A program made the position numbers and the translations under genes. The notes under the pieces are model-generated. The model had not been told where the DNA came from. It worked only from the letters and a program-made list of their open reading frames with translations, and made no database searches. A stretch of 64,000 nt of DNA, taken from contig NZ_JMCB01000001.1 in assembly GCF_000737315.1 (NCBI RefSeq), positions 1 through 64,000 of the forward strand, in the 5' to 3' direction. The DNA is from Hyalangium minutum. Its GTDB lineage: Bacteria > Myxococcota > Myxococcia > Myxococcales > Myxococcaceae. Positions 13,829 through 60,029 of the stretch are shown here, one piece after another; position 1 is the stretch's first letter, and every line of letters begins with the position of its first letter.

Positions 13829-13858
13829 GTCTCGTGGATCGAGCGCTCACCCCGCTCG

Positions 13859-19269: not shown

Positions 19270-19973
19270 CGTTTGCATCCCGTGACGACAATCTTGAGGG
19301 TGGGATCCTGTCGCCGCAGCGCTTCTTTGTGCGCAGCACTGCTCACCCCAACGACGAAATCATATCCACACGCTACCGCGATGGCGCGCTCCTCCTGAAG
19401 CTCTTCTACTTGATCCTCGATCACCTGCCTCCGGAGGAAGTCAGTGTACGTGTCAAATCGATGGGTCTTGATCTCCCACAGCACACGCACGCCGACTTGC
19501 AGCGCATCAAAGCGCTTGCCGCCAACGAGCACGTCATTGCCGGGGTAGCGGTTCGGCGGAAACTTATCGGCGCACTCGTTATGCGGGGCATCCTCGCCCG
19601 CGTGCGGCACCGGGATGGGTTCACACTCAGAACGGCGGCGCTCCGCCGTCACCGGGGCGGGTGGGCCTCTGTTCGATCCGGCGCTCTCCGGCAAGGGGTT
19701 TGCCTGCGGCTCCTGCGAGGCCCGAGGAGCGTCTCCGGCCCAAAGGCCCGGCTCCCGGGTGGGCGGCAGCTCGCGCTTGTGCGGGCTCCGCGGCAGGGGC
19801 TGGGGGCGAACCTGCCCTGGCTGCCCGCGAGTGGGGAGGCCCGTGCCAGGCACAGCGGGTGGGCGCACAGGCGCCCAGGCGTAGGCCTCAGGCGCTTCTC
19901 GAGAGGTGGCGCACCCAGCGACGACAACGGCAACGGCAACGGCTTGGAGGAGGGCGCTGGCTGAAGAGGGCAT
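19266..19973 (-). CDS. DUF6310-like lipoprotein, REase-fold polymorphic toxin
   Basis: Lipobox VVAGC after ATG at 19973; PD-(D/E)xK-like FDAL...LWEIK; CGYDFVVGVSS. Confidence 0.75.
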   Translation of the reverse strand: MPSSASALLQAVAVAVVVAGCATSREAPEAYAWAPVRPPAVPGTGLPTRGQPGQVRPQPLPRSPHKRELPPTREPGLWAGDAPRASQEPQANPLPESAGSNRGPPAPVTAERRRSECEPIPVPHAGEDAPHNECADKFPPNRYPGNDVLVGGKRFDALQVGVRVLWEIKTHRFDTYTDFLRRQVIEDQVEELQEERAIAVACGYDFVVGVSSAAHKEALRRQDPTLKIVVTGCKR

Positions 19974-20099
19974 GGTGCTCACCGCTTCTCCAGGTGGAGG
20001 AACTGCGGAAGGGCAGAGGAGGCCGAGCTGGACGACAAGGCTACCACGCGCGGGAGCCGTGGACGCCGAGGTTCCGGAAGATCTTTGCCAAGGCGGGAA

Positions 20100-20178
20100 T
20101 ACGGAAACGGCGCTCGACCGAGTTGGAGCGCTCTCGCCAAAAGCTCCGAGCGGCGGGTTCGATTCCCGCCGCCTCCAC
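20100..20178 (+). repeat. 78-bp direct repeat, copy 2; 3' end resembles the tmRNA/tRNA T-arm and acceptor strand (att-like site)
   Basis: cggcggg-ttcgatt-cccgccg hairpin (20151-20171) followed by cctccac. No 5' half of a tRNA or tmRNA is visible. Confidence 0.85.
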
Positions 20179-20222: not shown

Positions 20223-21605
20223 TCAGGCTCCGAAGGACTGCGTGAGGCGCGCAATGGCTCCGGGCAGGCCGCGCACGCGGAGCTTGCGCCCGCTCTCATC
20301 GAAGGACTCGGAGAGCACCGTCGTGTGCTCGTACACCTCGCTGATGCGCGACTGGGAGGCGTAGGGGATCACCAGGTCCGCATCGACCATGGAGGCCGCG
20401 AAGGCGCTCAGGATGCGCTCGCGCAGGAGCCCCACGTCCTCTGGCCGGTGCGCGGAGAGCAGCATCGCCTCCGGGTGGCGCGAGCGCAGCGCCTCTTGTG
20501 CCGCCGCATCCAGCCGGTCCACCTTGTTGAAGAGCAGCTGGCTCGGGACGGCGTCCGCTCCGATCTCCCGCAGCACCGTGCGGGTGACCTCCAGCTGCGT
20601 GTTCCAGGTGGGATCGGACGCATCCACCACGTACAGCAGCAGCGAAGCCTCGAGCGCCTCGTCGAGCGTGGAGCGGAAGGAGGCGACGAGATCATGCGGC
20701 AGCTTCTGGATGAAGCCCACCGTGTCCGAGACGAGCACGCGCGGACGGCTCTCTGGCTGCAGGGCCCGCACCGTGGTGTCGAGGGTGGCGAAGAGCTGGT
20801 CGGCCACCAGCACCTCACTGCCGGTCAGGGCGCGCATCAGCGAGGACTTGCCTGCGTTGGTGTAGCCGACCAGCGCCACGCGCAGCTGGTCGCGGCGCGC
20901 GTAGCGGCGCTGGTCCTGGTCCTTCTGGATGGCGGCGAGCCCCTCGCGCAGCTCGGCGAGGCGGTCGCGAATCTTTCGGCGGTCGAGCTCCACGGCGGAG
21001 TCCCCGGAGCCGCGGCCCTGCTGCCGCTCCCTTCCTCCGGTGGACTCGCGCAGGCGGGGCGCGAGGTAGTTAAGCCGGGCGATCTCCACCTGCATGCGCG
21101 CCTCGTGGCTGCGCGCGTGCCGGTGGAAGATGTCCACGATGACGCCTGTGCGATCCAGCACCTGCGCCCCGGTGGCCTTCTCCAGGTTGCGCAGCTGGCT
21201 CGGGGAGAGCTCGTGGTCCACGACTACAATCGTGGGGCGCTGCGCCACCTCGCCTGGGGCGTCCTCCGCGGGCGGTGCGGCCTCCTCGTCTCCGGGCTCC
21301 TCGTGTGCTGCGTCCGCGGACTCCCAGCGCTCGCGCGCCTTCGATGTCCGCTCCTGCGCGCCGGATGCGATGACGCCGCTGCCGCCGGTGAGCTGCGCCA
21401 GCTCCTTGAGCTTGCCGGTGCCCAGCACCGTCCCGGAAGCCAGCCCCTCGCGGCGCTGGCTCACGGTGGCCACCGCGTCGTAGCCCAGGGTCTTTACCAG
21501 CCGGGCGAGTTCCGCGAGGTCTGCGGCGTGCTCCGCGTCCGAGACGTCGGGGAGTTGCACGCCGACGAGGACAGCAAGAGGACGGGCAGAGAGGGTCTTC
21601 GGCAT
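20223..21605 (-). CDS. hflX: GTPase HflX
   Basis: ILDRT-like VLDRTGVIVDIF, ELDRR, GYTNAGKSS, LFATLDTT, DTVGFI, NKVD. Confidence 0.95.
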   Translation of the reverse strand: MPKTLSARPLAVLVGVQLPDVSDAEHAADLAELARLVKTLGYDAVATVSQRREGLASGTVLGTGKLKELAQLTGGSGVIASGAQERTSKARERWESADAAHEEPGDEEAAPPAEDAPGEVAQRPTIVVVDHELSPSQLRNLEKATGAQVLDRTGVIVDIFHRHARSHEARMQVEIARLNYLAPRLRESTGGRERQQGRGSGDSAVELDRRKIRDRLAELREGLAAIQKDQDQRRYARRDQLRVALVGYTNAGKSSLMRALTGSEVLVADQLFATLDTTVRALQPESRPRVLVSDTVGFIQKLPHDLVASFRSTLDEALEASLLLYVVDASDPTWNTQLEVTRTVLREIGADAVPSQLLFNKVDRLDAAAQEALRSRHPEAMLLSAHRPEDVGLLRERILSAFAASMVDADLVIPYASQSRISEVYEHTTVLSESFDESGRKLRVRGLPGAIARLTQSFGA

Positions 21606-36607: not shown

Positions 36608-37075
36608 CTACTTCTTCAATTCCGCGGGCGCGCTGCGCTGGGCGGCTTCGATGGTCTCGATGGCCGCGGCGGCCAGCAGGCGCGCTCGCATGGTGAGCGG
36701 ATCCTTGTTCTCCGGATCCAGATCGACCGCTCGGGCAAAGTCCTGAGCGGCCTCCATGATGTTGCCCAGGCGCAGGTGCACCTCGCCCCGGTTGACCAGC
36801 GCCGCCGAGTCCTTCGGGTTGAGCTTCAGCGCCTCGTCAAAGGCCTCCAAGGCCGCATCCAGCTCGTCCTCGGCCAGATAGATGGCGCCCAGGGCGGTCC
36901 GGTAATAGGCCTCCAGGGGGTCCTGCTGCGCCAGCTCCTCGAAAATGAGCCGAGCCTCTGGATAGTCGCCCTCCTCATAGAGGCGGAAGCCCTCCATGGC
37001 CCGCTCGAGCAACTCGGGGGAGGACAACGTATTCGCCTCCTCGTTTGCGACCATCGCCTTGGATTCCGTCGTCAT
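36608..37075 (-). CDS. SycD/LcrH-like TPR chaperone
   Basis: 155 aa; YRTALGAIYL, ALVNRGEVHL; three TPRs. Confidence 0.75.
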   Translation of the reverse strand: MTTESKAMVANEEANTLSSPELLERAMEGFRLYEEGDYPEARLIFEELAQQDPLEAYYRTALGAIYLAEDELDAALEAFDEALKLNPKDSAALVNRGEVHLRLGNIMEAAQDFARAVDLDPENKDPLTMRARLLAAAAIETIEAAQRSAPAELKK

Positions 37076-37311: not shown

Positions 37312-37539
37312 CTACACCGCCAGGTTCTGGATGACGCTCTTGCTCATCTCGTGCAGCGCCTTCATCATCGTCGTCGCCAGCTGCACCATCTCCTGCATCC
37401 GCTGCATCTCGGACTGAACCTTCAGAAGGTTCTTCTGCTCCGCGGGGATGTTCTGGTTGTCGATCCACGAGTTCATCGTGCCGACGTTGCTGTTGATGGT
37501 GCCAGAGAAGTTGTTGAAAACGCCACCGAGGCTGGACAT
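37312..37539 (-). CDS. 75-aa needle/filament-subunit-like protein, copy 1 (isolated)
   Basis: MSSLGGVFNNFSG...EQKNLLKVQSEMQ...TTMMKALHEMSKSVIQNLAV; RBS aaggag. Confidence 0.85.
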   Translation of the reverse strand: MSSLGGVFNNFSGTINSNVGTMNSWIDNQNIPAEQKNLLKVQSEMQRMQEMVQLATTMMKALHEMSKSVIQNLAV

Positions 37540-37599: not shown

Positions 37600-37650
37600 A
37601 TTATCGGTTCTGGGCAGAGGGAGTTTCCTGGAATTTTCCGGATCATTTCC
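37600..37650 (-). promoter_or_regulatory. sigma28-type promoter GAAA-N15-ACCGATAA with upstream GGAAA repeats
   Basis: Sense strand ggaaatgatccggaaaattccaggaaactccctctgcccagaaccgataat. Confidence 0.75.
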
Positions 37651-39018: not shown

Positions 39019-39522
39019 CTACTCCTCGAGGGCCTCGTCGGCCTTCTTCTGCAGCATGGCCAGGGTGGCGCGGGCGCGCTTGGTGGTGTCGCGCTTGGCC
39101 TCCGGGTCCAGCTTCAGGGCAGCGAGGATGTCCTTGAGGGCATCCTCGAGCTTGCCCTCTTGCAGGTACAGCTCGCTGCGGCCCACCAGCGCATCCACGT
39201 TGGCGATGTTGAGCCGCAGGGAGGTGGTGTACTCCTCCAAGGCCTCGGGGAGCTGCTTGAGCTGGTGGTACGCGAACGCCAGATTCACGTGGAAGACGCT
39301 GTCATAGGGCGAGGCGGCCACCAGCCCCAGGAAGATGTCGCGCGCCTTCTCCAGATCGCCCCGCTTGAGCATGTTGTTGCCCATGGTCGCGATCTCATAC
39401 AGCTGCTTCTGCGAGAGCCCCAGGTACTGCGCGGGGGTGATGTCTCCGGCGACGAGCATCTCGCCGAGCTCCTCCTTGCTGGGAGCCTTGGCGCTGCCGG
39501 GCTTCTGCGGCGTGTCACTCAT
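39019..39522 (-). CDS. SycD/LcrH-like TPR chaperone
   Basis: LGLSQKQLYEIATMG, FHVNLAFAY, ALVGRSELYL. Confidence 0.8.
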   Translation of the reverse strand: MSDTPQKPGSAKAPSKEELGEMLVAGDITPAQYLGLSQKQLYEIATMGNNMLKRGDLEKARDIFLGLVAASPYDSVFHVNLAFAYHQLKQLPEALEEYTTSLRLNIANVDALVGRSELYLQEGKLEDALKDILAALKLDPEAKRDTTKRARATLAMLQKKADEALEE

Positions 39523-39610: not shown

Positions 39611-40720
39611 TTACGCCGTGAAGGTGTTGCGGAACGGCTGCACGGCCTTGCTGAGGTGATCCAGGCCGCGGAACAGGTGCAGCATGCGGCCGATGGAGTC
39701 GAAGTCCTTGCCGAGGCGCTCCTGGCGGCGGTTCAGCCAGCTGCCGGGCCCGGGGCGCGCGGTCAGGCCGCCGTCCTGCTCGTGGCGGCGCGACAGCTGC
39801 TCGGCCAGCTTGGACAGGCCCTTGAACACATCCGACAGGCCCTTGAACACGTCGCGCATCTGCTTCAGCAGCGCGTCGGCGCCCTGCTGCGCGCCCGACG
39901 GCTGGGTGGTCGGGGTGCCCGGAGCCAGATCCTTGCCCAGCTTGAAGGACTCGCCGCCGTTGTTGCTGCCGACGATCTCCTTGCCCGTGAAGGACCAGTC
40001 ATCGGTCTCCTTGCCCATCACGAACACGTCCTTGCCACCGAAGTCGTTGACGTGCTGGAAGCCGTCGTGGGTGACCTGGCCGGTCTTGCCCTTGCCCTTG
40101 TCGATGTCCGTCACCTGCACGCGGTCGTTGCCGGAGATGATGTCCAGGCCGCCGGTCACCGTCATGCCGTTGCCGTAGGGCTTGGTGGTGACGTTGATAC
40201 GGGTGCCGTCGCCCAGCACGAAGGTGCTGTCCTTCTTGAAGTCCCACTTGCCGCCGTCGCCCTCGGCCACGTGCGGGTCGCCCCAGATCTTCGTCTCCTT
40301 GCCGTCCGGACCGGAGATCTTCCAGTCGAACTGGCCGAGCTGCTCGATCTTGTAGCCGCCGGGGGTGGTCACCACGCCGTTGGAGCTCGTCTGCAGGCTG
40401 CCCTGGGGGTGCGAGCCCTGCGAGGGGTTCGGGGTCTCAGGACCCACCGCCATCTTCCACAGGTCGTCCAGCGAGCGGGGGCCCGTGGAGGACGGAGGAA
40501 CGAAGCCGGTGTTGCCGCCGGCCGCAGTGCCCGGCGAGGTGGCGCCGGGGGGAACGAAGCCGGTGTTGCCCGTGGCCGCGGTGCTCGGGGCCTGCGCGGA
40601 GGCGGCCTTGATCAGCTGCGCCTCGAGCTTGTTGAGCTTGCCCTCGAGGGTGCTCAGCTGGGAGCTGAGGGTGTTGAGAGGATTGGCTCCGATACCCACA
40701 GGCTTCGACGTGATCGACAT
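39611..40720 (-). CDS. DUF1521-like domain protein (T3SS-associated)
   Basis: TKIWGDPHV...WDFKKDSTFVLGDGTRINVTTKP core; low-complexity N-terminus; helical C-terminus. Confidence 0.75.
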   Translation of the reverse strand: MSITSKPVGIGANPLNTLSSQLSTLEGKLNKLEAQLIKAASAQAPSTAATGNTGFVPPGATSPGTAAGGNTGFVPPSSTGPRSLDDLWKMAVGPETPNPSQGSHPQGSLQTSSNGVVTTPGGYKIEQLGQFDWKISGPDGKETKIWGDPHVAEGDGGKWDFKKDSTFVLGDGTRINVTTKPYGNGMTVTGGLDIISGNDRVQVTDIDKGKGKTGQVTHDGFQHVNDFGGKDVFVMGKETDDWSFTGKEIVGSNNGGESFKLGKDLAPGTPTTQPSGAQQGADALLKQMRDVFKGLSDVFKGLSKLAEQLSRRHEQDGGLTARPGPGSWLNRRQERLGKDFDSIGRMLHLFRGLDHLSKAVQPFRNTFTA

Positions 40721-40803: not shown

Positions 40804-40858
40804 AGTATCGGCCCATCCGCTTCAGAGTTTCGTGGCGATTTTCACCAACATTATCGGT
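40804..40858 (-). promoter_or_regulatory. sigma28-type promoter GAAA-N15-GCCGATAC upstream of the DUF1521 gene
   Basis: Sense strand gaaactctgaagcggatgggccgatact; an additional ACCGATAAT further upstream. Confidence 0.65.
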
Positions 40859-41026: not shown

Positions 41027-41254
41027 TCACACCGCCAGGTTCTGGATGACGCTCTTGCTCATCTCGTGCAGCGCCTTCATCATCGTCGTCGCCAGCTGCA
41101 CCATCTCCTGCATCCGCTGCATCTCAGCCTGAACCTTCAGAAGGTTCTTCTGCTCCGCGGGGATGTTCTGGTTGTCGATCCACGAGTTCATCGTGCCGAC
41201 GTTGCTGTTGATGGTGCCAGAGAAGTTGTTGAAAACGCCGCCGAGGCTGGACAT
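41027..41254 (-). CDS. 75-aa needle-subunit-like protein, copy 2 (QAE allele)
   Basis: Identical to copy 1 except one S-to-A change; RBS aaggag. Confidence 0.85.
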   Translation of the reverse strand: MSSLGGVFNNFSGTINSNVGTMNSWIDNQNIPAEQKNLLKVQAEMQRMQEMVQLATTMMKALHEMSKSVIQNLAV

Positions 41255-41314: not shown

Positions 41315-41365
41315 ATTATCGGTTCTGGGCAGAGGGAGTTTCCTGGAATTTTCCGGATCATTTCC
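41315..41365 (-). promoter_or_regulatory. sigma28-type promoter of copy 2
   Basis: GAAA-N15-ACCGATAA, same as the copy 1 promoter. Confidence 0.75.
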
Positions 41366-41516: not shown

Positions 41517-41744
41517 TCACACCGCCAGGTTCTGGATGACGCTCTTGCTCATCTCGTGCAGCGCCTTCATCATCGTCGTCGCCAGCTGCACCATCTCCTG
41601 CATCCGCTGCATCTCGGACTGAACCTTCAGAAGGTTCTTCTGCTCCGCGGGGATGTTCTGGTTGTCGATCCACGAGTTCATCGTGCCGACGTTGCTGTTG
41701 ATGGTGCCAGAGAAGTTGTTGAAAACGCCGCCGAGGCTGGACAT
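41517..41744 (-). CDS. 75-aa needle-subunit-like protein, copy 3
   Basis: Same protein as copy 1; RBS caggag. Confidence 0.85.
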   Translation of the reverse strand: MSSLGGVFNNFSGTINSNVGTMNSWIDNQNIPAEQKNLLKVQSEMQRMQEMVQLATTMMKALHEMSKSVIQNLAV

Positions 41745-41805: not shown

Positions 41806-41857
41806 ATTATCGGGCCAGCCCTGCCGGAGTTTCCTGCGACTTTTCCGGATCATTTCC
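41806..41857 (-). promoter_or_regulatory. sigma28-type promoter of copy 3
   Basis: GAAA-ctccggcagggctgg-CCCGATAA. Confidence 0.75.
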
Positions 41858-42461: not shown

Positions 42462-42692
42462 TTACACCGACAGGTTCTGGATGGTGCTCTTGCTCATCTC
42501 GTGCAGCGCCTTCATCAGCGTGGTGGCCAGCTGGGTCATCTCCTGCATCCGCTGCATCTCGGACTGAACCTTCAGCAGGTTCTTCTGCTCCGCCGGGATG
42601 TTCTGGTTGTCAATCCACGAGTTCATCGTGTTGACGTTGCTGTTGATGGTGCCCTGGAACTGGTTGAAGACGCCCTGCAGTGCCTGCGACAT
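42462..42692 (-). CDS. 76-aa divergent needle-subunit-like paralog, copy 5
   Basis: MSQALQGVFNQFQGTINSNVNT...MSKSTIQNLSV. Confidence 0.85.
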   Translation of the reverse strand: MSQALQGVFNQFQGTINSNVNTMNSWIDNQNIPAEQKNLLKVQSEMQRMQEMTQLATTLMKALHEMSKSTIQNLSV

Positions 42693-42751: not shown

Positions 42752-42802
42752 ATTATCGGAGTCACCACCCCCGAGTTGCTTGGGGATTTTCGGAATCATT
42801 TC
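42752..42802 (-). promoter_or_regulatory. sigma28-type promoter of copy 5
   Basis: GCAA-N15-TCCGATAA. Confidence 0.7.
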
Positions 42803-42939: not shown

Positions 42940-43167
42940 TCACACCGCCAGGTTCTGGATGACGCTCTTGCTCATCTCGTGCAGCGCCTTCATCATCGTC
43001 GTCGCCAGCTGCACCATCTCCTGCATCCGCTGCATCTCGGACTGAACCTTCAGAAGGTTCTTCTGCTCCGCAGGGATGTTCTGGTTGTCGATCCACGAGT
43101 TCATCGTGCCGACGTTGCTGTTGATGGTGCCAGAGAAGTTGTTGAAAACGCCGCCGAGGCTGGACAT
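42940..43167 (-). CDS. 75-aa needle-subunit-like protein, copy 6
   Basis: Same protein as copies 1 and 3. Confidence 0.85.
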   Translation of the reverse strand: MSSLGGVFNNFSGTINSNVGTMNSWIDNQNIPAEQKNLLKVQSEMQRMQEMVQLATTMMKALHEMSKSVIQNLAV

Positions 43168-43229: not shown

Positions 43230-43281
43230 ATTATCGGACCCACACCGCCGGAGTTTCCTCCGGTTTTCCAGGATCATTTCC
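43230..43281 (-). promoter_or_regulatory. sigma28-type promoter of copy 6
   Basis: GAAA-N15-TCCGATAA. Confidence 0.75.
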
Positions 43282-44078: not shown

Positions 44079-44555
44079 TCAGCGGCGACCCGTGAGCGAG
44101 GAAATCATCGCATTGGCCTTCCGAGTCACCGGGTCATCCTCCGCAGCCAGCGAGGCGGCGCGGCGCAGATCCTCGATGGCCTGCGACTTCTGGCCCATGG
44201 TGAGCTTCACCTCGGCGCGGCCCACGTAGGCCTGGGCATCGTCCGAGGCCAGCTTGATGGCCACGTCATAGGCGGCCAGCGCGCCCTGGGCGTTGCCCGC
44301 GGCCAGCTCCACCACCCCGAGCGCCTTGGCGAAGTACGGATCCGTGGGGTTCACCGCGTAGAGCCCCTGGAAGAGCGTCCGCGCCTCGTTCACCCGGCCC
44401 TGGTGGAAGAAGAAGTAGGCCGTCTTGGCGATGGCGTAGAGCTCATCGTCTGAGTAGCCGCGCACGTCGCGCAGGGTCGCCTTGCCGTCCGCCCACTTCT
44501 GCAGGGCCGCGACGAGCTTCGCCTCTTCCTGGGGGCTGTTGGGGTCCGCAGCCAT
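44079..44555 (-). CDS. SycD/LcrH family class II chaperone
   Basis: GYSDDELYAIAKTAYFFF..G, YFAKALGVVE, AYVGRAEV. Confidence 0.85.
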   Translation of the reverse strand: MAADPNSPQEEAKLVAALQKWADGKATLRDVRGYSDDELYAIAKTAYFFFHQGRVNEARTLFQGLYAVNPTDPYFAKALGVVELAAGNAQGALAAYDVAIKLASDDAQAYVGRAEVKLTMGQKSQAIEDLRRAASLAAEDDPVTRKANAMISSLTGRR

Positions 44556-45080: not shown

Positions 45081-45365
45081 CTACTTCTTGGCGCCGCTCG
45101 CCTGCTGCTCCTGCTGCAGGGCGTAAACGAAGTTCAGCACCTCGGCCACCGCGTCATACAGCTCCTCGGGGACTTCCTGGCCCACGTCGACGCGGTAGAG
45201 CGCATTGGCCAGGGGGAGATTCTTCATGATGGGGATGTTGTACTGCTTGGCAATCTCGCGGATTTTCTCCGCCTTGAGGCGCATCCCCTTGGCCACGACC
45301 CGAGGCGCGCCGTCCTTCTCCTTGTCGTACTTCAGCGCGATCGCGATCTCCGTCTCGTCGTTCAT
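45081..45365 (-). CDS. Stand-alone FlhB/SctU C-terminal domain protein
   Basis: [20 protein letters not shown]...IPEELY-like [13 protein letters not shown]. Confidence 0.9.
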
Positions 45366-48412: not shown

Positions 48413-49048
48413 TCAGGAGCGCGGCGGCGTGGAGCCGGTGCGGCGGGAGAGGAGCTTCTGGAGGAAGGGGCTCAAAGGCACGACGTTGGAGGGCTGGGGG
48501 CGCTCGGCCTGGATGCGATCGACCGCCTGGGTGTCGAGCTTCGACAGCAACTGGAGGCCGCCCTCGCCGCTGCCGACCAGGAGGTACTCGTCCGCGGCCT
48601 TCAGCACGAAGAGGGTGCGGCGCTGATCGAGCGGCACCCGCTCCACCACAGACACCAGCGACTGGCTCCGGCGGCCCATCGGGCCCTGCAGCCCCATCAG
48701 CTTGCGCAGGCCCACGTTGAGCGTCAGGTAGATGCTCAGCAGCACCGTGCCCAGCAGCAGCAGCGTGCGCGCGAGCACCCAACCGAGGTTCTCGGGCTCC
48801 GCACTGGCGGTGTCCTCGGCCGCGAACGGATCCGGCAAGTCACTGCCAGGAGCCGCCACGGCGGGAGCAGCCGGAGCCGGGGCGGGAACCTGGGCAGCAG
48901 GCTGCTCAGGGGCAGGCGCCGCGACGGGCGCCGCCGTGGGAGCGGGCACGGCAGCCGAAGCCTCCGCGAGGGCAAGCGGCGGCGCGAGCAAGAGGCAGGC
49001 ACAGGCCAGCAGGGACCAGCGCGGGTTCGATAGGAGGGAGGCCACCAT
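48413..49048 (-). CDS. FliO-like export-gate assembly protein
   Basis: Single TM then VVERVPLDQRRTLFVLKAADEYLLVGSGEGGLQLL (FliO pattern), directly upstream of fliP/sctR. Confidence 0.75.
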   Translation of the reverse strand: MVASLLSNPRWSLLACACLLLAPPLALAEASAAVPAPTAAPVAAPAPEQPAAQVPAPAPAAPAVAAPGSDLPDPFAAEDTASAEPENLGWVLARTLLLLGTVLLSIYLTLNVGLRKLMGLQGPMGRRSQSLVSVVERVPLDQRRTLFVLKAADEYLLVGSGEGGLQLLSKLDTQAVDRIQAERPQPSNVVPLSPFLQKLLSRRTGSTPPRS

Positions 49049-49143
49049 GACTGGGAGCGAGGCTAGTCCATTCCCAGGCGAGACCGCCATGGCTCCACCG
49101 TGGATCCCCGACGCCACCCTGCTCGCCCGCCAGCCAACAGGCT

Positions 49144-50463
49144 TCACCCGGCCAGGGAGAGGACCCGGACACCCAGCTGGCCCTCGACTTCGACCAGCTC
49201 GCCCCGAGCCACCACCTTGCCATTGACGGACAGCTCCACTGGCTCGCCGGGCGAGCGGTGAAGCTCGATGACTTGTCCCACCTTCAACGCCACCACCTCG
49301 TCGGCGGTAACGGGAACCCGGGCCAGTTCCACGGCGAGCTGCAGCGGGATGTCAGCCAGCAAGTCGCCTCCCTCCGGCCTGTTCGCGTCGTCCATATTCC
49401 CTTCCGACTCCGGAGGCATCTCATTCTCCGGGTTGGTGAAAACCTCGTTGTCGTTGGCGGGGGGCAGGACGCGCTGGAAGTTCGGCTCGCCCAGGATGAA
49501 GTCCTTGACGCGCGCCTTGTACTGGCCGTCCTCGACGAAGACCTCTGCCTCCACTCGGGTGCCGCCCAGCCCCACGCGCAGCGTGGCCGTGCCTGCCTCA
49601 CCCCGGTCCGGACGGGTCGAGAGCGAGTCCAGCAGCACCACGTCCTTCACGCGGATGTACTCCAGATCGGAGCTGGCGATCTCCGCCTGGCCGATCTCCG
49701 CGCGCAGCCACGTGCGCACCGTGGACAGCAGCTTCCGGTTCATCCGGATGTCCGCGCGCAGGCGGCTGCGCTTCTCCGCGCCGCCACGCCCCTCTTCGGT
49801 GGCATTGAGCACCGCCGGAGGCATCACCACGCGCACGATGCCCGCGTGGGGCCCCACCGAGGCGTTCATCTGCACGACGACCACCAGCTCGTCATCCCCA
49901 AGCTTGGCGGCCACCTCGTCCACGCCCCGGGCGACGGACTCCAGCCGCATGCGCGGAAACGAAGCCTCCAGCGCGGGCGCCACGGCCTTGATGCCCTCGA
50001 GGACCACGAAGCTCATCACGCCTTCTTCGATGTCCGTCAGCGGCCGCAGGCCCACTGTCTCGCCCGCGCCACCCAGCAGCATGTCCACCAGGTTGTGGGC
50101 GAACGATAGCTCCACCTCCATCACCACCCGGCTCTTGAGCGCTCCGGGCGCGAGCACCGTCAGGAAGGAGGGCTCGCCCAGGTGGCGGCGCAGCTCCGCG
50201 ATGGGGCGGATCTGCATGCTCACGAGGGAGACGCGGGCCTCGGCGTCGAACAGCGCCTTGAGCCGGGCATAGAGGGGCTCAGCCGCGGTGGGAGACGGAA
50301 TGGCCCGGTGGAGGCGAGCCGTCAGCTCCGTCTGGGCGCGGTCCACGCGCTCCAGGTTGCGGAACTTGAACGGCTTCCAGGGCTTGGAGGGCTTTATCTG
50401 GCGGAGGTCCACCAGCATCGTTCGCTCGTGGATTCCGGGTTCATCATCCCGGCCAAGGCTCAT
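49144..50463 (-). CDS. sctQ: T3SS sorting-platform protein SctQ (FliM/FliN-like)
   Basis: C-terminal SpoA domain DIPLQLAVEL...GELVEVEGQLGVRV. Confidence 0.9.
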   Translation of the reverse strand: MSLGRDDEPGIHERTMLVDLRQIKPSKPWKPFKFRNLERVDRAQTELTARLHRAIPSPTAAEPLYARLKALFDAEARVSLVSMQIRPIAELRRHLGEPSFLTVLAPGALKSRVVMEVELSFAHNLVDMLLGGAGETVGLRPLTDIEEGVMSFVVLEGIKAVAPALEASFPRMRLESVARGVDEVAAKLGDDELVVVVQMNASVGPHAGIVRVVMPPAVLNATEEGRGGAEKRSRLRADIRMNRKLLSTVRTWLRAEIGQAEIASSDLEYIRVKDVVLLDSLSTRPDRGEAGTATLRVGLGGTRVEAEVFVEDGQYKARVKDFILGEPNFQRVLPPANDNEVFTNPENEMPPESEGNMDDANRPEGGDLLADIPLQLAVELARVPVTADEVVALKVGQVIELHRSPGEPVELSVNGKVVARGELVEVEGQLGVRVLSLAG

Positions 50464-51455
50464 GCCCGGGCCTCGAAGCGCAGATCTTCAAGCTTGAGGC
50501 CCCGGCCCTGCAGCGCACTCTTGAGGCCTTCGCTCTGCTCCTCGATCATCTTGAGCACGTCCCGATCGCTGCCGCTGAAGACGGCGGAGATCTTCCCGTT
50601 CTTCGCGCTGAGCTTGATGGACAAGCCGCTGAGGACGTTGCTGCGCAGGTCGATCTGGAACTCGGCCGCGCCCGCGCCGTTGGTGCCCACGCGGACCTTC
50701 TCGACGATCTTCTGGGCAATCTCGTTGGCGATGGCGCGCAGCCGGTCCGAGCCCGTGGTGGGCTTGGGCTTGGCCACCGGCACCGGAGCCATCAGCGCTG
50801 GGTTGAAGCGGAAGCCCGCCGCGGCCGCCGCATCCCCACCCTGCTTGCCGTCCTTGTTCCCACCGCCCTGCCCGCCGCCGGAGTCCGCGTCCGTCTTCAG
50901 AGCGCCCTTCTGGCCCGCGCGGCCGGCGCTGCGCAGATCCGAGGCCTGATCGTCCGCCTTGGCATCGCCCTCGGACCTCGCCTCGGAGGAGCGCGACTCG
51001 TGGAGAGACTCCGAGGACTCACGGCCGTGCTTGCGGTCCACCGCCATGGCCTGGCCCTGGGCGGTGTCGGAGGAGTGGCTCTCGGACATCTTCTCGGCCT
51101 CACCCGAGAGAGAGGACTCGACGCGCTCGTTGAGGGCCTTGGCGTCCTGGCGGCCCTGGGTCTTGCCCGTCTCCTGGCGCTGGCCGGTCTGCCGGGCGGC
51201 AGTGCCCTCCTGCTGGCTCGTCTCGGAGCCCTTGGCTTCCTTGGTGAGGCGCGCGAGCACCTGCGACCCCAGGCCCTGCTTCGTCTCCTGCTTCTGCTGG
51301 GTCTGGGCCTGCTGCGTCTGCGAGCTCTGAACCAGCTTGGAGAAGGCGTTCTCGCCCTGCCGGATCTGCTTGCTCTTGGCCTCGGCGCGCTGCTTCTCCT
51401 GCAGCAGGCGCTGGGTAATCTGGTCTGCCTGGCGATCGTCTTCGACTCGGCTCAT
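50460..51455 (-). CDS. sctP: SctP/FliK-like length-control (ruler) protein
   Basis: Long Q/S/G-rich disordered region plus a C-terminal T3S4-like domain; canonical position between sctO and sctQ. Confidence 0.7.
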   Translation of the reverse strand: MSRVEDDRQADQITQRLLQEKQRAEAKSKQIRQGENAFSKLVQSSQTQQAQTQQKQETKQGLGSQVLARLTKEAKGSETSQQEGTAARQTGQRQETGKTQGRQDAKALNERVESSLSGEAEKMSESHSSDTAQGQAMAVDRKHGRESSESLHESRSSEARSEGDAKADDQASDLRSAGRAGQKGALKTDADSGGGQGGGNKDGKQGGDAAAAAGFRFNPALMAPVPVAKPKPTTGSDRLRAIANEIAQKIVEKVRVGTNGAGAAEFQIDLRSNVLSGLSIKLSAKNGKISAVFSGSDRDVLKMIEEQSEGLKSALQGRGLKLEDLRFEARA

Positions 51456-54023: not shown

Positions 54024-55784
54024 CTAGCGCGATCCCCCGCGAGGTCCACGCCCCGAGTTGCCCCCAGAAGGGGGCCGGGTGGGCCGCTGGCCGCCTGCTC
54101 CCCCGCCGCGTGAGGCCAGGGACGGCCGGGCTGCCGTCTTTCCCGAGAGGACCCGGGGCGGACGCTCCGGTTCGTTTGTAAGTGAACTGCTCACCCCCGT
54201 CCCTCGGCTGCGGACACCCGGCGAGGAAATGACGCGAGAGCCATCCGGGTCCATGGGGGCCGGCGGCCGGTCGGCCATGCGCGGAGGAACGCGAGCGGGA
54301 GGCACTCCGCGCGGATCCCCTTCACGCGGCCGGGAGGGCGCACCCGCCTCGGGCGGAGGCCGGCGAGAGCCCGCACGGGAGTTCTCGACCTCAGGAGGAG
54401 GCTGACGGGAGCCGACGCGAGAGGCCTCTCTTGAGGGCGGAGGGCCCACCCGGGCGCCCCCGGGCTCCGGCGGCACGCCCTGTGAGTCTTTCCGCGGCCC
54501 CACGCGCGCGTTGCGCGAGAGCGCGGGTGGATCGTCGTCGATGGGAGGACCGATGCGAGAGGGCTCGCGCGAGGAGAGCGCTCCGGCTCGGCGAGCAGCG
54601 CGCTCGGCCATGGGATCCCGGCGGACGCTGCTGTCCCCGGAGTTGGCGCCTCCCGTGGGCCCCGCGAATCCCGCGCGCCGGGCCTCGCGCTCGGCCATGG
54701 CATCCCGGCGGGGCGCAGGCGGCGGCTGGACGACGTTGGAGCGCTCCTGGCCTCCAGGGGGCGGACGCGCGGGAGGTGGCTCGCGGCTGGGAGGCGCGCC
54801 ACGCATGGGTGGCGGGTTGAGCGCCGGACGCTGCGGGGTGAGCCGCACAGGGCGCTCGATGAGGCCTCGGGCGGCCAGCCGCTCCAGATCCGCGACGATG
54901 TCGGCACGGCCGCCGTCCGTCACACGAGAGGCGGGCTTGGAGCGCTCGTCGCGAACCCACTTGGCCAGCAGGCTCCCGAAGTCCCCGCGGTGGCGCTCGA
55001 GCATGCGCGCGGCGAACTCCGCGGACTGAGACACACACGCACGAGCCAGGCGCTGGGTGCCCGCGCTGCGGATGGCGCCCGCCAGATTCTTCAGCCCGTC
55101 ATGGACGGCGAGCTGCTCCTTGGCCTCCTCTGAAGGCAGCTTACGTGGGGCGTTGGCCTGGACGGCCTTGGAGGCCAGGGACTTCATGTCCGGCGGAAGG
55201 GCGGCGATGAGCCCCTCGCGCTGCGCATCCTCGAGCCCGGCCATCGCCGGCCCCAGCACGCGCGCGCCGAGCCGATCACACACGGTGAGCAGCTCACGCG
55301 GCTGCAGCATGAGCACATCGGTGAACTTGAAGGCGGCCTGGGAGCCGGAGCTGTGCTTGAGCCGCTCCTCGAGCTTCCAGCGGATGATGTCCAGCACCTG
55401 CGGACGCACCTCGCGGGAGAGCTTCACTGGGCGCTGCGGCAGGTGGGCACGCACGGCCTCGGCCAGCACGGAGGGCAAGGCCCGGAGCACCACCTCGGCC
55501 AGCGCGCCGCGCTCCTTCTGGATGAGGGCAGCCAGCTTCTCCGGCTCGGCGTTCCAGAGCTGGCCGCGCCGGTCCTTCACCAGCTTCTTGATCTCCTGCA
55601 CGAGAAACGGAATCCGCTTCTCACGCGGGATGTGCATGATCTCCTGCGCGCGGTGGAGCAACAGCTCCCCGTCCTCCGGCGCGAGGTGCTCGAGCGCGGC
55701 GACGCCCTCCTGACCGCCGAAGGTGATGGCGGTCAGCAGCAGCATCGTCTGGCGCTTGTTGAGCGAGGTGAAGAATTGATCCAA
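54024..55784 (-). CDS. SctK/FliG-like helical protein with long Pro/Arg-rich tail
   Basis: Position between sctJ and sctL; helical N-terminal part; disordered C-terminal part. Confidence 0.55.
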   Translation of the reverse strand: MDQFFTSLNKRQTMLLLTAITFGGQEGVAALEHLAPEDGELLLHRAQEIMHIPREKRIPFLVQEIKKLVKDRRGQLWNAEPEKLAALIQKERGALAEVVLRALPSVLAEAVRAHLPQRPVKLSREVRPQVLDIIRWKLEERLKHSSGSQAAFKFTDVLMLQPRELLTVCDRLGARVLGPAMAGLEDAQREGLIAALPPDMKSLASKAVQANAPRKLPSEEAKEQLAVHDGLKNLAGAIRSAGTQRLARACVSQSAEFAARMLERHRGDFGSLLAKWVRDERSKPASRVTDGGRADIVADLERLAARGLIERPVRLTPQRPALNPPPMRGAPPSREPPPARPPPGGQERSNVVQPPPAPRRDAMAEREARRAGFAGPTGGANSGDSSVRRDPMAERAARRAGALSSREPSRIGPPIDDDPPALSRNARVGPRKDSQGVPPEPGGARVGPPPSREASRVGSRQPPPEVENSRAGSRRPPPEAGAPSRPREGDPRGVPPARVPPRMADRPPAPMDPDGSRVISSPGVRSRGTGVSSSLTNEPERPPRVLSGKTAARPSLASRGGGAGGQRPTRPPSGGNSGRGPRGGSR

Positions 55785-56772: not shown

Positions 56773-57324
56773 TTACACCTGGGTCTTGACCACGTCCTTG
56801 AGGCCGCTGGTGGCCTTCTCGACGACCTTCGACGTGAGGTCCAGCTCCTGGGTGTACTTGTACATGGAGGCCTGGAGCGAGAGCAGCTCCGAGTTGGAGA
56901 AGTTCTTCCCGCTCATGCCGGAGTTGATGAGCTTCTCCAGGTTCATCTGGCCCTTCTCCAGCGAGGAGACGACGCTGGAGACCATGGTGTTGGCCTTGCT
57001 CGTCTGCGCCTTCGCGTCCACCGGCTCCGCGGCCTTGGCGGTCAGCTGCTGGCTGTTGGCGCCGTTGACCTTGTTGAGGCCTGCCTTCTCCGTCTTGTTG
57101 ACGTCGTCGACCTTACGCGACGCGTCGACCTGCTGGGCCTTCTGCGTCTGCTGGACCGACTGCGCCTGCTGCACGCCCTGGGCCTGGTCAACGCCCTGAG
57201 ACTTGTTAGCGAGAACCCCGTCGAACTTCGAGGCTCCCTGCTTGTTCACCTGCTGCGCGCCCTGATCCTGCAGCTTCTGCTGCGCGATCTGTGCGGCCGA
57301 GATGCCTGCTGTCGGACCCGCCAT
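56773..57324 (-). CDS. sctI: SctI-like inner rod protein
   Basis: C-terminus ELLSLQASMYKYTQELDLTSKVVEKATSGLKDVVKTQV matches the YscI/HrpB2 pattern; lies upstream of sctJ. Confidence 0.7.
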   Translation of the reverse strand: MAGPTAGISAAQIAQQKLQDQGAQQVNKQGASKFDGVLANKSQGVDQAQGVQQAQSVQQTQKAQQVDASRKVDDVNKTEKAGLNKVNGANSQQLTAKAAEPVDAKAQTSKANTMVSSVVSSLEKGQMNLEKLINSGMSGKNFSNSELLSLQASMYKYTQELDLTSKVVEKATSGLKDVVKTQV

Positions 57325-58039
57325 GTGACTGCCTCCTTGCATCGTCGGAGGAAGCCGGGGCTTCCTCGTCGTCTAAAAGTTCCTTGAGCCGCTCGATGGC
57401 CCGCGCATGAAGCCGCGACGCCCAGCTCTTCGACTGCCCAATCTCCGCGCCCGCCTCTTCCAGCGTCTTCCCGTGGAAGTAGTACCCCTGCAGCAGCTGC
57501 CGCTCCTTCTCCGGGAGCTGATCGATCGCCGCCCTCACCCGCCGCTTCAGCTGCTCCATCTCCAGCCGCTGATCCGCCGGCAGAGACTCATCCACGTACC
57601 CCGACGCGTCCAGCCCTTCCAGGCTGGTGGCCAGCACCATGGCCAGCCCCGTCACCGCGTTGGAGATGTCATTCACATCATCGTCAAATGACCCTCCGCG
57701 GTTGCCTCCGCCCTGCTCGCGGTCCGACAAATTTCCAAGGTAAGCGGCCGCCCGTTCACCCACGAACGCGCCGCGCGCATCCGCGCCCTTCAACACCCCC
57801 ATTTTCCTCAGGCCGTCGAAAATGGCGCCCTTGATGCGGTAGTGGGCAAAGGTGAGGAAATTGGCTCCCACCTTGGGATCAAAGCGATCTGCCGCCTCGA
57901 GCAGACCGATCTGCCCGTAGGCCATCAACTCCTCGATCTCGAGCTGGGCGTTGAACTGCTTGCGGACAGTCGCTGCCAGCGACCGCACGTAAGGGCCGTA
58001 TTTCTCGAGGATCGCCTTCTTGTCGTCGCCGAAGCCCAA
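57206..58039 (-). CDS. FliA/WhiG-like (sigma28-type) RNA polymerase sigma factor
   Basis: Region 2 EELMAYGQIGLLEAADRFDP...YRIKGAIFDGLR; region 4 LPEKERQLLQGYY...TLEEAG...SRLHARA. TTG start inferred; 3' end overlaps the sctI start. Confidence 0.85.
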   Translation of the reverse strand: MGFGDDKKAILEKYGPYVRSLAATVRKQFNAQLEIEELMAYGQIGLLEAADRFDPKVGANFLTFAHYRIKGAIFDGLRKMGVLKGADARGAFVGERAAAYLGNLSDREQGGGNRGGSFDDDVNDISNAVTGLAMVLATSLEGLDASGYVDESLPADQRLEMEQLKRRVRAAIDQLPEKERQLLQGYYFHGKTLEEAGAEIGQSKSWASRLHARAIERLKELLDDEEAPASSDDARRQSHGGSDSRHLGRTDRAAEAAGSGRAAGEQAGSLEVRRGSR

Positions 58040-58046
58040 ACGCCGC

Positions 58047-58448
58047 TCACTCGGCCTTCGACCACAGCCGCTCAAGAACCTGGTTGAGCCGGGGATCCTC
58101 TTGGAGCGCGTCCGCGATCTTGCTGGAGAGCGCGGAGGACTTCATCCGGAGCTTCTCCTTGAGGACCTCAGCGACGAGGTGCTTCGTGGCCTCCTCCTTG
58201 TTCTTGAAGCCGCCGTTCTTGAGCTGCTTGGCGATGGCCATGGCCTGGGAGGAGATGGGATCCGCCGCCCGGGCCTGCTCGACATTGGAAGAGCCCACCA
58301 GCCCGGAGGGCCCCACCAGGGACTCGGCCTTGTCGACCTTGCCCCCGAAACTCGAACCACCCGCGGGAGCCTTGCCGGACGCACCCCTCGCGCCACCCGC
58401 ACGGCCCTTACCACCCCCGCGTCCTACGCCACCGACTGACATCGCCAA
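58047..58448 (-). CDS. Hypothetical protein, possible FlgM-like anti-sigma
   Basis: Gly-rich N-terminus; AIAKQLKNGGFK segment; immediately upstream of the sigma gene. Confidence 0.6.
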   Translation of the reverse strand: MAMSVGGVGRGGGKGRAGGARGASGKAPAGGSSFGGKVDKAESLVGPSGLVGSSNVEQARAADPISSQAMAIAKQLKNGGFKNKEEATKHLVAEVLKEKLRMKSSALSSKIADALQEDPRLNQVLERLWSKAE

Positions 58449-58475: not shown

Positions 58476-58910
58476 CTACTTCTTCGGCGGAGGCAGCGCC
58501 CCCGCCTCTTTTGCATCGATGAGGGCACGCGCGAGCCGGGCGCCATCGCCCTCGGGCTCGAGATCCACCGCGGCCTTCAGTTCCTTCAGCGCTTCCGGGA
58601 CCTTGCCCATGAAGAGTAGCGCTTCGCCAGCGTGCGCGCGCGGCAGGGCGGAGTTCGGGGCCAGACGCTGGGCCGCCCGGTAGGCTTGCAGGGCCTTGTC
58701 GTGGCGCCCCTGGGCGAACTCCAGCGCGCCCAGCGCCAGCTGCGGCACCTCGCTCTTGGGCATCAAGGCCACGGCGCCGGTGAAGACGTCCTTCGCCTTG
58801 TCGTACTTGCCCATCTCCAGCCAGATGTAGCCGGCCTCGAGCAGGATCATCGCCTGCTGCTTGCCCACCGGGACGACGCTGCCAGCAATCTCCGACGCAG
58901 ACTCCGCCAT
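58476..58910 (-). CDS. TPR chaperone (SycD- or YscG-like)
   Basis: Three TPRs; next to the long needle-like paralog. Confidence 0.75.
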   Translation of the reverse strand: MAESASEIAGSVVPVGKQQAMILLEAGYIWLEMGKYDKAKDVFTGAVALMPKSEVPQLALGALEFAQGRHDKALQAYRAAQRLAPNSALPRAHAGEALLFMGKVPEALKELKAAVDLEPEGDGARLARALIDAKEAGALPPPKK

Positions 58911-59008
58911 GAAGCGTGCTCTCCTGTGCAAGGGCCCGGAAGGAAGAAGGGGGGCAGTACCGCAGCCCCCCTTCCCACTCGGCGCCCGACCACCAACAGC
59001 TTAGCGGA

Positions 59009-59584
59009 TTAGCGGATGTTGCCGATCGCGTTCTTCGCCGTCTCGTGGCGGGACTTCAGCACGTTGGAGACGGCCTGGTACTTCTGGGACTCCTGCTGCA
59101 TGGCGGACTGGAGCTTCAGCAGGTTCTTCTGCTCCTGGAACATGCCGGCCAGCTCACCGTTGAACTCGGAGCCCGGCGTGCCCGTGTTGCCCGCCAGGTA
59201 GTTCGGGCCGCCCGCGGTGCCGCCGCCGCCCACGCCCGGGATGCCGACGCTGCCGCCGGAGCCCACGGTGGTGTTCACGGAGGGAACGCCCACCGAGCCC
59301 GCGCCCGTGCTGCCCGAGCCCGCGCCCGGCAGAACCGACGTGTACGGAGTGGACGCGCCGCCAGTGGCGCCCGACGCGGTAAGCGTCGTCATCGACGAGA
59401 CCGCCGCCGAGACGATGCCGCCACCGGAGAACATCCCCGTGGCCAGACCCACGCCGCCGGCGACCGCGCCCGCCGCGTTGTTCACGCCCGCCTGAACGCG
59501 AGCACCGAAGCTCGTGTCCGGGGTCTGCCGACCCACCGACAGGTTGGTAGACATCCGAGGACCCATCAATCCATCGACCTTCAT
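59009..59584 (-). CDS. 191-aa Gly-rich protein with needle-subunit-like C-terminus
   Basis: EQKNLLKLQSAMQQESQKYQAVSNVLKSRHETAKNAIGNIR aligns without gaps to the 75-aa proteins. Confidence 0.8.
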   Translation of the reverse strand: MKVDGLMGPRMSTNLSVGRQTPDTSFGARVQAGVNNAAGAVAGGVGLATGMFSGGGIVSAAVSSMTTLTASGATGGASTPYTSVLPGAGSGSTGAGSVGVPSVNTTVGSGGSVGIPGVGGGGTAGGPNYLAGNTGTPGSEFNGELAGMFQEQKNLLKLQSAMQQESQKYQAVSNVLKSRHETAKNAIGNIR

Positions 59585-59652
59585 TTTTTCCTCCAGCGTT
59601 CGGACAACTTCGAAAGGTTCAGAGCCCCGGCCAGCCCGGCGCTCTCATTGTA

Positions 59653-59680
59653 ATTATCGCTGATCACGCGCCTGGGTTGC
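59653..59680 (-). promoter_or_regulatory. sigma28-type promoter GCAA-N15-AGCGATAA
   Basis: Sense strand gcaacccaggcgcgtgatcagcgataat, about 70 bp before the ATG at 59584. Confidence 0.6.
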
Positions 59681-59750: not shown

Positions 59751-60029
59751 CTACTTGCGGCCCTTGCCGCCCTTGTTCTCCGCGATCAGATGTTCGCGCG
59801 TTTCGAGAAGAATGCCCAGTAGCTCTTCGGCGCTTGACAACGCGGCCTGGATCTTCTTGCCCTGCTCAGCCTTGGGACCCTTGAGGGTGTCGAGGCCCTC
59901 CTTGATGGGGTTGAAGAGCGACTGGACCTCTTCCGCGGTGGCGCCCTCGATGAAGGACTCGATCGCCGGATAGGACGGAGTGGGAAGAGGCTCAGCTTCA
60001 GGGGCTTGCTGCTGCTTGGGAGGAGGCAT
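59751..60029 (-). CDS. Small helical hypothetical protein at the head of the T3SS cluster
   Basis: 92-aa ORF; amphipathic helices. Confidence 0.7.
   Translation of the reverse strand: MPPPKQQQAPEAEPLPTPSYPAIESFIEGATAEEVQSLFNPIKEGLDTLKGPKAEQGKKIQAALSSAEELLGILLETREHLIAENKGGKGRK

Follow-up and report, generated by a model that had tools for sequence, protein, structure and literature searches.

Does the "needleless" type III secretion system of the myxobacteria, the T3SS*, build an axial structure, and which proteins could form it? Papers published between 2012 and 2025 describe the Myxococcus xanthus T3SS* as having no needle, tip or translocon homologue, and models have been built on the missing needle, with a loss of SctF in the earliest-branching type III secretion system (T3SS) of the non-flagellar kind and with effectors passed to a Kil/Tad pilus (PMC3459982, PMC10433427, PMC12075869, PMC12428579). 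The T3SS* is required for prey lysis by M. xanthus (PMC12075869). The question is raised here by a gene of Hyalangium minutum. The window, i.e. the whole stretch of 64,000 nt analysed (contig NZ_JMCB01000001.1, GC content 67%), exhibits on its minus strand a complete T3SS cluster at about 31.3-60.0 kb. Its orthologue in M. xanthus is the T3SS* cluster, with a 70% identical SctU and an equal order of the genes from SctJ to SctV and of the FHA gene. The second gene counted from its upstream end, 59009-59584(-), encodes a protein of 191 amino acids (aa), hereafter the target. In the literature searched, we found no discussion of the corresponding M. xanthus genes.

We propose, at a probability of about 0.5, that the target is a long HrpA-like subunit of the needle/pilus class, located in the SctF slot of the myxobacterial T3SS* cluster. 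Since a conserved 191-residue protein in the needle/pilus slot ends in a needle-like helix, the "needleless" T3SS* probably builds some axial structure. The SctF-slot protein with its needle-type helix and the short SctF-like genes of the same cluster are concrete candidates for this missing structure.

The target protein and its C-terminal helix

The open reading frame (ORF) 59009-59584(-) is a genuine gene. Its parts, and the small paralogues with which its product is compared, are as follows.

59009-59584 (-): target gene, 191 aa, ATG start, GC content at third codon positions 0.91; candidate for a long needle/pilus-class subunit in the SctF/HrpA slot
59590-59594 (-): ribosome-binding site GGAGG, 5 nt ahead of the target ATG, as read from the sequence
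59375-59584 (-): residues 1-70, conserved N-terminal domain, PRMSTNL..RQTPDTSFGARVQ.GVN.AAGAV...PGGGIVSAAVSS
59171-59374 (-): residues 71-138, Gly/Ser/Thr/Pro-rich linker, variable in length and sequence, predicted to be disordered
59009-59170 (-): residues 139-191 and stop codon, amphipathic C-terminal helix, ending ...SNVLKSRHETAKNAIGNIR
42940-43167 (-): 75-aa SctF-like paralogue, T3SS_needle_F E-value 5e-6, with the promoter type of the target and a terminator
42462-42692, 41517-41744, 41027-41254 and 37312-37539 (-): four further 75/76-aa SctF-like genes, making five copies in the window

The same three-part layout (N-terminal domain, linker, C-terminal helix) is found across 27 orthologues of the target. 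The N-terminal 70 residues exhibit the motifs RQTPDTSFGARV and PGGGIVSAAVSS, with a column identity of 72-74%. The linker, 34% of which is Gly, shows the lowest column identity of the protein (43-52%). The C-terminal helix is strongly conserved and ends with the pattern SNV(L/M)K(T/S)RH(D/E)T.KN(A/S)IGNIR. An earlier reading of this locus from the sequence alone (the original prediction) had described about 145 aa of Gly/Ser-rich sequence ahead of the helix; this description holds for residues 71-138, residues 1-70 being a conserved domain. The target has no Cys, no Sec signal at its N-terminus and no transmembrane segment (maximum 19-residue Kyte-Doolittle mean of 1.4). We identified 126 close homologues, and for the family as a whole a HMMER search of 1.84 billion representatives yields 2741 clusters at 50% identity. 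Its database members are named "hypothetical" or bear the generic UniProt name "Type III secretion protein".

Sequence comparison shows that the last 44 or so residues of the target share homology with the C-terminal helix in the five 75/76-aa SctF-like proteins. The gap-free match to the 75-aa protein that the original prediction had pointed out is exact, with 18/40 identities and 28/40 positives to 42940-43167(-) in BLASTP (pairwise E-value = 6e-11). The Smith-Waterman score of the two proteins is 96 (93 for the C-terminal parts alone). None of 20,000 shuffled alignments reached the real score (mean 26-28, standard deviation 4.8, maximum 57; z ≈ 14), with the same outcome when both helical C-termini alone were shuffled. 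Profile-profile alignment with hhalign also supports the homology: 24 sequences of the C-terminal helix, drawn from many taxa, align with the 75-aa family over 43 columns at a probability of 95.2% (E-value = 2.8e-8), and the 150-sequence full-length target family does so at a probability of 94.1% (E-value = 1.2e-7). The match between the target family and the family of the SctI-like protein of the cluster is weak (E-value = 0.013-0.045).

The 75-aa protein itself matches the Pfam model T3SS_needle_F over its whole length (E-value = 5e-6), its 27.1 bits just missing the cut-off of 29.4, and a precomputed PF09392 match is present on all six of its database relatives (6/6). The original prediction had spoken of a single 75-aa protein, versus the five copies counted here. 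Short SctF-like genes are present in the M. xanthus and Archangium clusters as well, contrary to the absence of a needle homologue stated in the literature. In M. xanthus (CP080534.1), two identical 74-aa ORFs (locus L091, 13765-13989 and 16157-16381) lie inside the "needleless" T3SS* cluster, on the strand opposite to it; their C-terminus ..LMKKLNEIAMSVIGKI is similar to the SctF-like proteins of the window. The Archangium gephyra locus (L092) exhibits at least four identical 72-aa copies (13285-13503, 13741-13959, 19953-20171 and 20439-20657) and, in addition, a fifth 72-aa gene call that the end of the locus truncates (..QMMKQMHEMAMSVIRNIGG).

The family shows a faint similarity to needle and pilus subunits in its own right. 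When 150 target-family members were scanned singly against 24,736 Pfam models, T3SS_needle_F was among the most recurrent weak families, with 19 members (best E-value = 0.0054), along with HrpA_pilin in 11 of the 150 (best E-value = 0.0078); HrpF came fourth in recurrence (5/150). The needle and HrpA matches extend to the end of the model and of the protein alike. As the scanned members are mutually related, this recurrence is a consistent pointer, not proof. A structure prediction of the target with AlphaFold2 (AF2) gives a helix at residues 140-190 with a per-residue confidence (pLDDT) of 76-89, helices at residues 26-45 and 59-70 with low to medium confidence, and disorder between them. The linker stays below a pLDDT of 50, with about 70 disordered residues, and the predicted template modelling score (pTM) is 0.29. 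The models have a pLDDT of 52 with 27 sequences and 60 with 150, and are mostly disordered. This predicted picture, a confident 50-residue C-terminal helix with disorder elsewhere, is as would be expected for an unpolymerised subunit.

Late promoters and gene order of the T3SS cluster

The target exhibits its own promoter and a hairpin at its 3' end.

59654-59680 (-): target promoter of sigma-28/FliA type, GCAAC-N16-CGATAA, one of seven matches in the window
37601-37627, 40805-40831, 41316-41342, 41807-41833, 42753-42779 and 43231-43257 (-): the remaining six promoter matches
57206-58075 (-): FliA/WhiG-like sigma factor, TIGR02479 E-value 3.1e-32 (below cut-off), Sigma70 regions 2 and 4
58944-58976 (-): GC-rich stem-loop of 12 bp right after the target stop codon, candidate terminator or attenuator

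The motif G[AC]AAC-N16-CGATA[AC] has seven matches in the 64 kb, all on the minus strand, for 0.00 expected, which bears out the earlier remark that the target and the 75-aa protein have the same promoter type. The seven matches precede the five 75/76-aa genes, a 369-aa DUF1521 gene and the target. Ahead of the target orthologue, each of the 36/36 loci has a single GCAAC with CGATAA about 16 bases further on. The motif is similar to the sigma-28 consensus, which we take to be TAAA-N15-GCCGATAA. These sigma-28-type promoters and the FliA/WhiG-like sigma factor encoded in the cluster amount to a flagellum-style late-gene regulon in a non-flagellar T3SS, and suggest how the late genes of the system are timed.

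The stem-loop after the target has a folding energy of -46 kcal/mol (z = -1.9). On folding the orthologues, a stem of 10-17 bp was found at the same position in 25/25 loci, with differing sequences. The hairpin of the target, which has no clean U-run, escaped a simple terminator scan; a strong terminator closes each of the small SctF-like genes and also the DUF1521 gene. Because of its own promoter and the conserved 3' hairpin, the target looks like a largely self-contained, late and strongly expressed transcription unit, and such a hairpin would suit the gene of an abundantly expressed subunit.

The cluster encodes SctV, SctU, SctT, SctS, SctQ (with FliM and FliN matches), a FliO-like protein, SctN, SctL, SctO and SctJ, and further an SctI-like protein, chaperones of the LcrH/SycD type with tetratricopeptide repeats (TPR) and the FliA/WhiG-like sigma factor. 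The gene order is: 92-aa gene, target, TPR gene, 133-aa gene, sigma gene, SctI, SctJ, 586-aa FliG-like gene, SctL, SctN, SctO, FliK-like gene, SctQ. According to a genome scan and tblastn this order is fixed in about 60 genomes of Cystobacterineae/Myxococcota (Hyalangium, Stigmatella, Archangium, Cystobacter, Vitiosangium, Corallococcus, Citreicoccus and other Myxococcota); the scan relied on exact peptide patterns, which Myxococcus-like variants such as P0128 escape, so that the lack of an M. xanthus target orthologue among its results does not speak against one. A gene count, 31 genes in mxan_2434-2464 versus 25 from SctJ to the FHA gene in L091, tentatively suggests MXAN_2435 as this orthologue. 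Divergent relatives of the target on contigs of 51-55% GC keep the gene order. The block F-(G-H)-I-J-K-L is ancient in T3SSs (yscE-F-G-H-I-J-K-L, pscE-L, prgH-I-J-K-orgA-B, hrpA-hrpZ-hrpB-hrcJ-hrpD-hrpE). On this scheme the target sits in the F/HrpA slot and the TPR protein in the G slot, and slots E and H are taken by the 92-aa and the 133-aa protein, respectively; the sigma gene is an insertion into the block. The neighbours of the target and other features of the cluster are listed below.

58476-58931 (-): TPR chaperone with TPR domains, candidate SctG-like partner, true start probably the ATG at 58910
59751-60029 (-): 92-aa gene upstream of the target, candidate SctE-like co-chaperone by position only
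58047-58448 (-): 133-aa gene in the SctH slot, overlapping the sigma gene, candidate secreted anti-sigma factor by position only
56773-57342 (-): SctI-like inner-rod protein, 189 aa, T3SS_basalb_I E-value 1.6e-3, NF038054 E-value 6.6e-3
54024-55784, 50460-51455, 49144-50463, 48413-49147 and 45081-45365 (-): flagellum-type parts, namely FliG-like, FliK-like, SctQ, FliO-like and a 94-aa FlhB-C-terminal-like protein
39611-40720 (-): DUF1521 protein, 369 aa, DUF1521 E-value 4.8e-13, with the shared promoter type and its own terminator
36608-37075, 39019-39522, 44079-44555 and 58476-58931 (-): four LcrH/SycD-like TPR chaperone genes

The adjoining TPR chaperone gene of the original prediction is thus confirmed, and it comes next after the target in 58 loci and in distant relatives. 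Its product matches the NCBIfam models LcrH_SycD (E-value = 3.5e-14), SctY (7e-6) and CdsG (1.8e-4), all below cut-off. In the PDB it matches only generic or designed TPR proteins, so that the SctG, SctY and LcrH classes are not separable. The 92-aa gene is kept upstream of the target in 56 loci, and the product, judged by its conservation pattern, may form a helix-turn-helix whose KGP turn is invariant; a YscE-like nature of this protein found no support in sequence (no family or PDB match). The 133-aa protein, kept in 57 loci, has a Gly-rich N-terminus and a conserved helical C-terminus. A FlgM-like nature of the 133-aa protein was rejected, there being neither Pfam or PDB support nor any other match.

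With 164-189 aa and a Gln-rich extension at its N-terminus, the SctI-like protein is longer than usual (also L093 2470-3030 and L088 5448-5942), and its orthologues match T3SS_needle_F (PF09392), not the inner-rod model. The sigma ORF ends about 135 nt inside the predicted SctI-like gene, which makes it probable that one of the two boundaries is misplaced. The SctI-like protein takes the slot before sctJ; the target as SctI inner rod was rejected on this ground and for lack of a match to PF17001/NF038054. The FliG-like protein occupies the SctK slot and its orthologues exhibit weak or faint FliG_M and FliG_C matches. The orthologues of the FliK-like protein have a Flg_hook match. SctQ has both FliM and FliN matches, and the 94-aa FlhB-C-terminal-like protein is encoded separately.

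The DUF1521 protein is a candidate for a secreted substrate or effector; DUF1521 is, we assume, the metal-induced autocleavage domain of rhizobial NopE effectors. Its gene is paired with an LcrH/SycD-like chaperone gene of its own, 39019-39522(-), and its M. xanthus orthologue is 388 aa long. A late-promoter gene lies directly upstream of three of the four TPR genes: a 75-aa copy before 36608-37075, the DUF1521 gene before 39019-39522 and the target before 58476-58931. The fourth, 44079-44555, follows a 158-aa gene that has no late promoter, and is the sole one above the NCBIfam cut-off.

Function of the target and rival explanations

A secreted subunit with a needle-type helix and a flexible extension, as the original prediction had imagined in general terms, fits the SctF/HrpA slot and the recurrent weak Pfam matches. 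Such a subunit would be transcribed largely alone from its sigma-28-type promoter, read by the FliA-like sigma factor of the cluster, and the same would hold for the DUF1521 gene and the five short SctF-like genes. In the cytoplasm the downstream TPR protein may keep hold of the amphipathic C-terminal helix of the target, in the way of PscG/YscG with PscF/YscF. The 92-aa upstream protein could act as an E-type co-chaperone, and premature polymerisation would thereby be prevented. After export by the T3SS through its signal-less, Ser/Thr/Asn-rich N-terminus, the target would pack by the C-terminal helix into a helical axial assembly atop SctI, alone or with the 75-aa subunits, at the base, shaft or tip of the structure. 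The conserved N-terminal domain and the Gly-rich linker would remain outside this assembly.

A broader picture, which we advance only tentatively, is a two-class axial structure in the predatory myxobacterial T3SS*. A long HrpA-like protein in the ancestral SctF slot and multi-copy SctF-like proteins of 72-76 aa would both be late gene products from sigma-28-type promoters, in a flagellum-style hierarchy, the helix module having also been taken up by Sec-exported proteins of other phyla.

Several observations weigh against a needle/pilus-class subunit. At E ≤ 1, neither Pfam nor NCBIfam has a model that matches the target itself, and none of the 150 members scanned reaches a curated cut-off (29.4 bits for T3SS_needle_F, 25 bits for HrpA_pilin). 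Family profiles, full-length and helix-only, gave only chance matches in the PDB, with no needle, rod, tip or flagellar protein. Structure comparison was of no help, since the AF2 models are mostly disordered and Foldseek of these models against the PDB was empty. With its 191 aa and a disordered insert of 70 residues, the target departs from the canonical two-helix hairpin. Polar residues predominate at the invariant positions of its helix (S, N, K, R, H, K, N, N, R), which could reflect binding to a specific partner rather than packing. No secretin or outer-membrane channel is known for the T3SS* (PMC3459982, PMC10433427), and hence no evident path for a filament.

The relatives away from T3SSs weigh most. 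Full-architecture homologues of Polyangiaceae have no T3SS gene within 10 kb and no TPR gene; they follow ftsE-ftsX, an EnvC-like gene and a gene for a Pro/Tyr-rich protein (loci L058, L070, L076, L077 and L078, around position 10000). Taken alone, the helix (56-67% identical over 36 residues) forms the end of proteins that bear clear Sec or lipoprotein signals and belong to other phyla (Terriglobia, Gammaproteobacteria, Hyphomonadaceae, Steroidobacteraceae), in unrelated neighbourhoods. The helix is therefore not limited to T3SS assemblies, and the step from sharing the helix to co-assembling with the needle is weakened. It is mainly because of these relatives that we hold the probability near 0.5. 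Other members of this wider family show further arrangements. A Gly-rich/helical small protein of 116-124 aa is encoded next after the Polyangiaceae homologue in L076, L080 and L083, and BLAST found no similarity between the 133-aa protein and the small gene after the Polyangiaceae homologues. The helix ..SNIMKTRHDTVKNSI.NVR of L071, L073, L074, L075, L079 and P0232 (L084) has no T3SS or flagellar genes nearby. A 744-aa protein (P0206; L085 8001-10235) carries eight tandem repeats of the N-terminal motif and the C-terminal tail of the family.

These relatives are also the basis of the explanation that we hold least probable, namely that the target is no part of a T3SS and belongs to a widespread envelope-associated helical family with another role, its association with the cluster being lineage-specific. 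The family is large, its Polyangiaceae members adjoin ftsE-ftsX-envC-like genes, and its relatives with Sec and lipoprotein signals stand in unrelated contexts. Against this, the position in the cluster is strictly kept in lineages from 51% to 69% GC, the chaperone-type neighbour is always present there, the promoter is common to the target and the needle-like genes, and the helix is homologous to SctF-like proteins. A tip protein, a translocator-like protein or a harpin-like accessory would account for the cluster position in another way: exported late, it would stay distal, or its Gly/Ala-rich N-terminal domain would target the prey envelope, and the helix would do no more than dock on the needle end. 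We consider this unlikely, even though the adjacent TPR protein has its best NCBIfam match in LcrH/SycD, a family of translocator chaperones, the target is Gly-rich, flexible and free of Cys like a harpin, a late-type promoter is common to it and the DUF1521 (NopE-like) protein, and prey lysis by M. xanthus needs the T3SS* (PMC12075869). None of the 150 members matches the LcrV, IpaD/SipD, EspA, Bsp22, harpin or translocator families, nor did the PDB profiles or Foldseek match the LcrV, IpaD/SipD, EspA and Bsp22 families, and the position upstream of sctI-sctJ is unusual for tip and translocator genes; the EspA/LcrV-like tip or filament-extension role of the original prediction finds no specific support in these results. 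The target is, moreover, highly conserved in deep lineages, whereas proteins in contact with host or prey usually evolve fast. A hydropathy maximum of 1.4 excludes a transmembrane segment; the Gly/Ala-rich N-terminal region as a membrane-spanning or translocator part, and the target as SctE/SctB (YopB/YopD class), were rejected on this value, in spite of the TPR neighbour.

That the target, TPR, 133-aa and sigma genes are always adjacent can also be read as a regulatory circuit. The target would then be a secreted regulatory substrate that occupies the TPR protein; after its export, the freed chaperone would act on the 133-aa protein and the FliA-like sigma factor, in a partner-switching relay like ExsE-ExsC-ExsD-ExsA or IpaB/C-IpgC-MxiE that couples secretion to late transcription. 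The overlap of the 133-aa and sigma genes, the sigma-28-type promoters ahead of the target and six other units, and the mostly disordered nature of the target are in line with such a relay. It leaves unaccounted for the helix homology to needle-like proteins, the weak needle/HrpA matches, the conserved N-terminal domain and the relatives that have no sigma or TPR neighbour. In addition, the target's own promoter and hairpin suggest high expression, and neither the target nor the 133-aa protein matches FlgM or a known anti-sigma factor. We thus regard the relay as quite improbable. The target as a FlgM-type anti-sigma factor (PF04316) was rejected, with no match in the target or in the family scan.

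Comparison with known systems

The regulon of the cluster resembles the flagellar class-3 regulon (FliA/sigma-28 with secreted FlgM, and flagellin and hook-associated genes) in its FliA-like sigma factor and in the sigma-28-like promoters before the target and small filament-type genes. In contrast to that regulon, the system of the cluster is not a flagellum, and its 133-aa candidate has no FlgM match.

EspA, SseB, Bsp22 and LcrV/IpaD are of a size similar to the target (EspA has about 190 aa) and resemble it in the proposed polymerising C-terminal coiled-coil helix on the needle. They differ from it in gene neighbourhood, tip genes normally sitting among translocator genes and not upstream of sctI-sctJ, and no sequence similarity between them and the target was detected.

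In PscE-PscF-PscG, as in YscE-YscF-YscG, the order small helical protein, subunit, TPR protein is the same as in the window. In the known needle-chaperone complex, the needle subunit has its C-terminal helix enclosed by the TPR chaperone (PMC3084799). The window differs in that its 92-aa protein exhibits no detectable similarity to YscE and its TPR protein is nearer to LcrH/SycD than to the SctG models.

Compared with SctF (PrgI, MxiH, YscF, PscF; PF09392), the target has 191 aa versus about 80, with a conserved 70-residue N-terminal domain and a Gly-rich disordered linker of 70 residues in place of a tight helix-turn-helix. It is thus not a small two-helix hairpin of 70-90 aa, and has no match above cut-off to PF09392/TIGR02105. 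Like SctF, it ends in its C-terminal helix with an SN..K......I.N.R pattern, a helix homologous to that of the needle through the SctF-like proteins of the window. The end of PrgI, which we take to be ...QSNTVKVFKDIDAAIIQNFR, aligns gap-free with ...VSNVLKSRHETAKNAIGNIR of the target. Also as for SctF, the gene stands upstream of sctI-sctJ-(K)-sctL with a TPR-type chaperone gene alongside, by the operon orders of general knowledge.

HrpA, the Hrp-pilus subunit of Pseudomonas syringae and Erwinia (PF09589), lacks a conserved N-terminal domain of the kind seen in the first 70 residues of the target, and no match to its model reaches the cut-off; the Hrp systems possess a secretin and act on plant cells. 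A partial likeness lies in the layout, a longer subunit with a freer N-terminal part (in the target, the variable linker) and a conserved C-terminal assembly region, and in the gene position. The hrpA gene heads its block and is followed by the SctI, SctJ, SctK and SctL homologues, as the target precedes those of the myxobacterial cluster, and the weak HrpA_pilin matches of the 11 family members span model positions 6-87 of 96.

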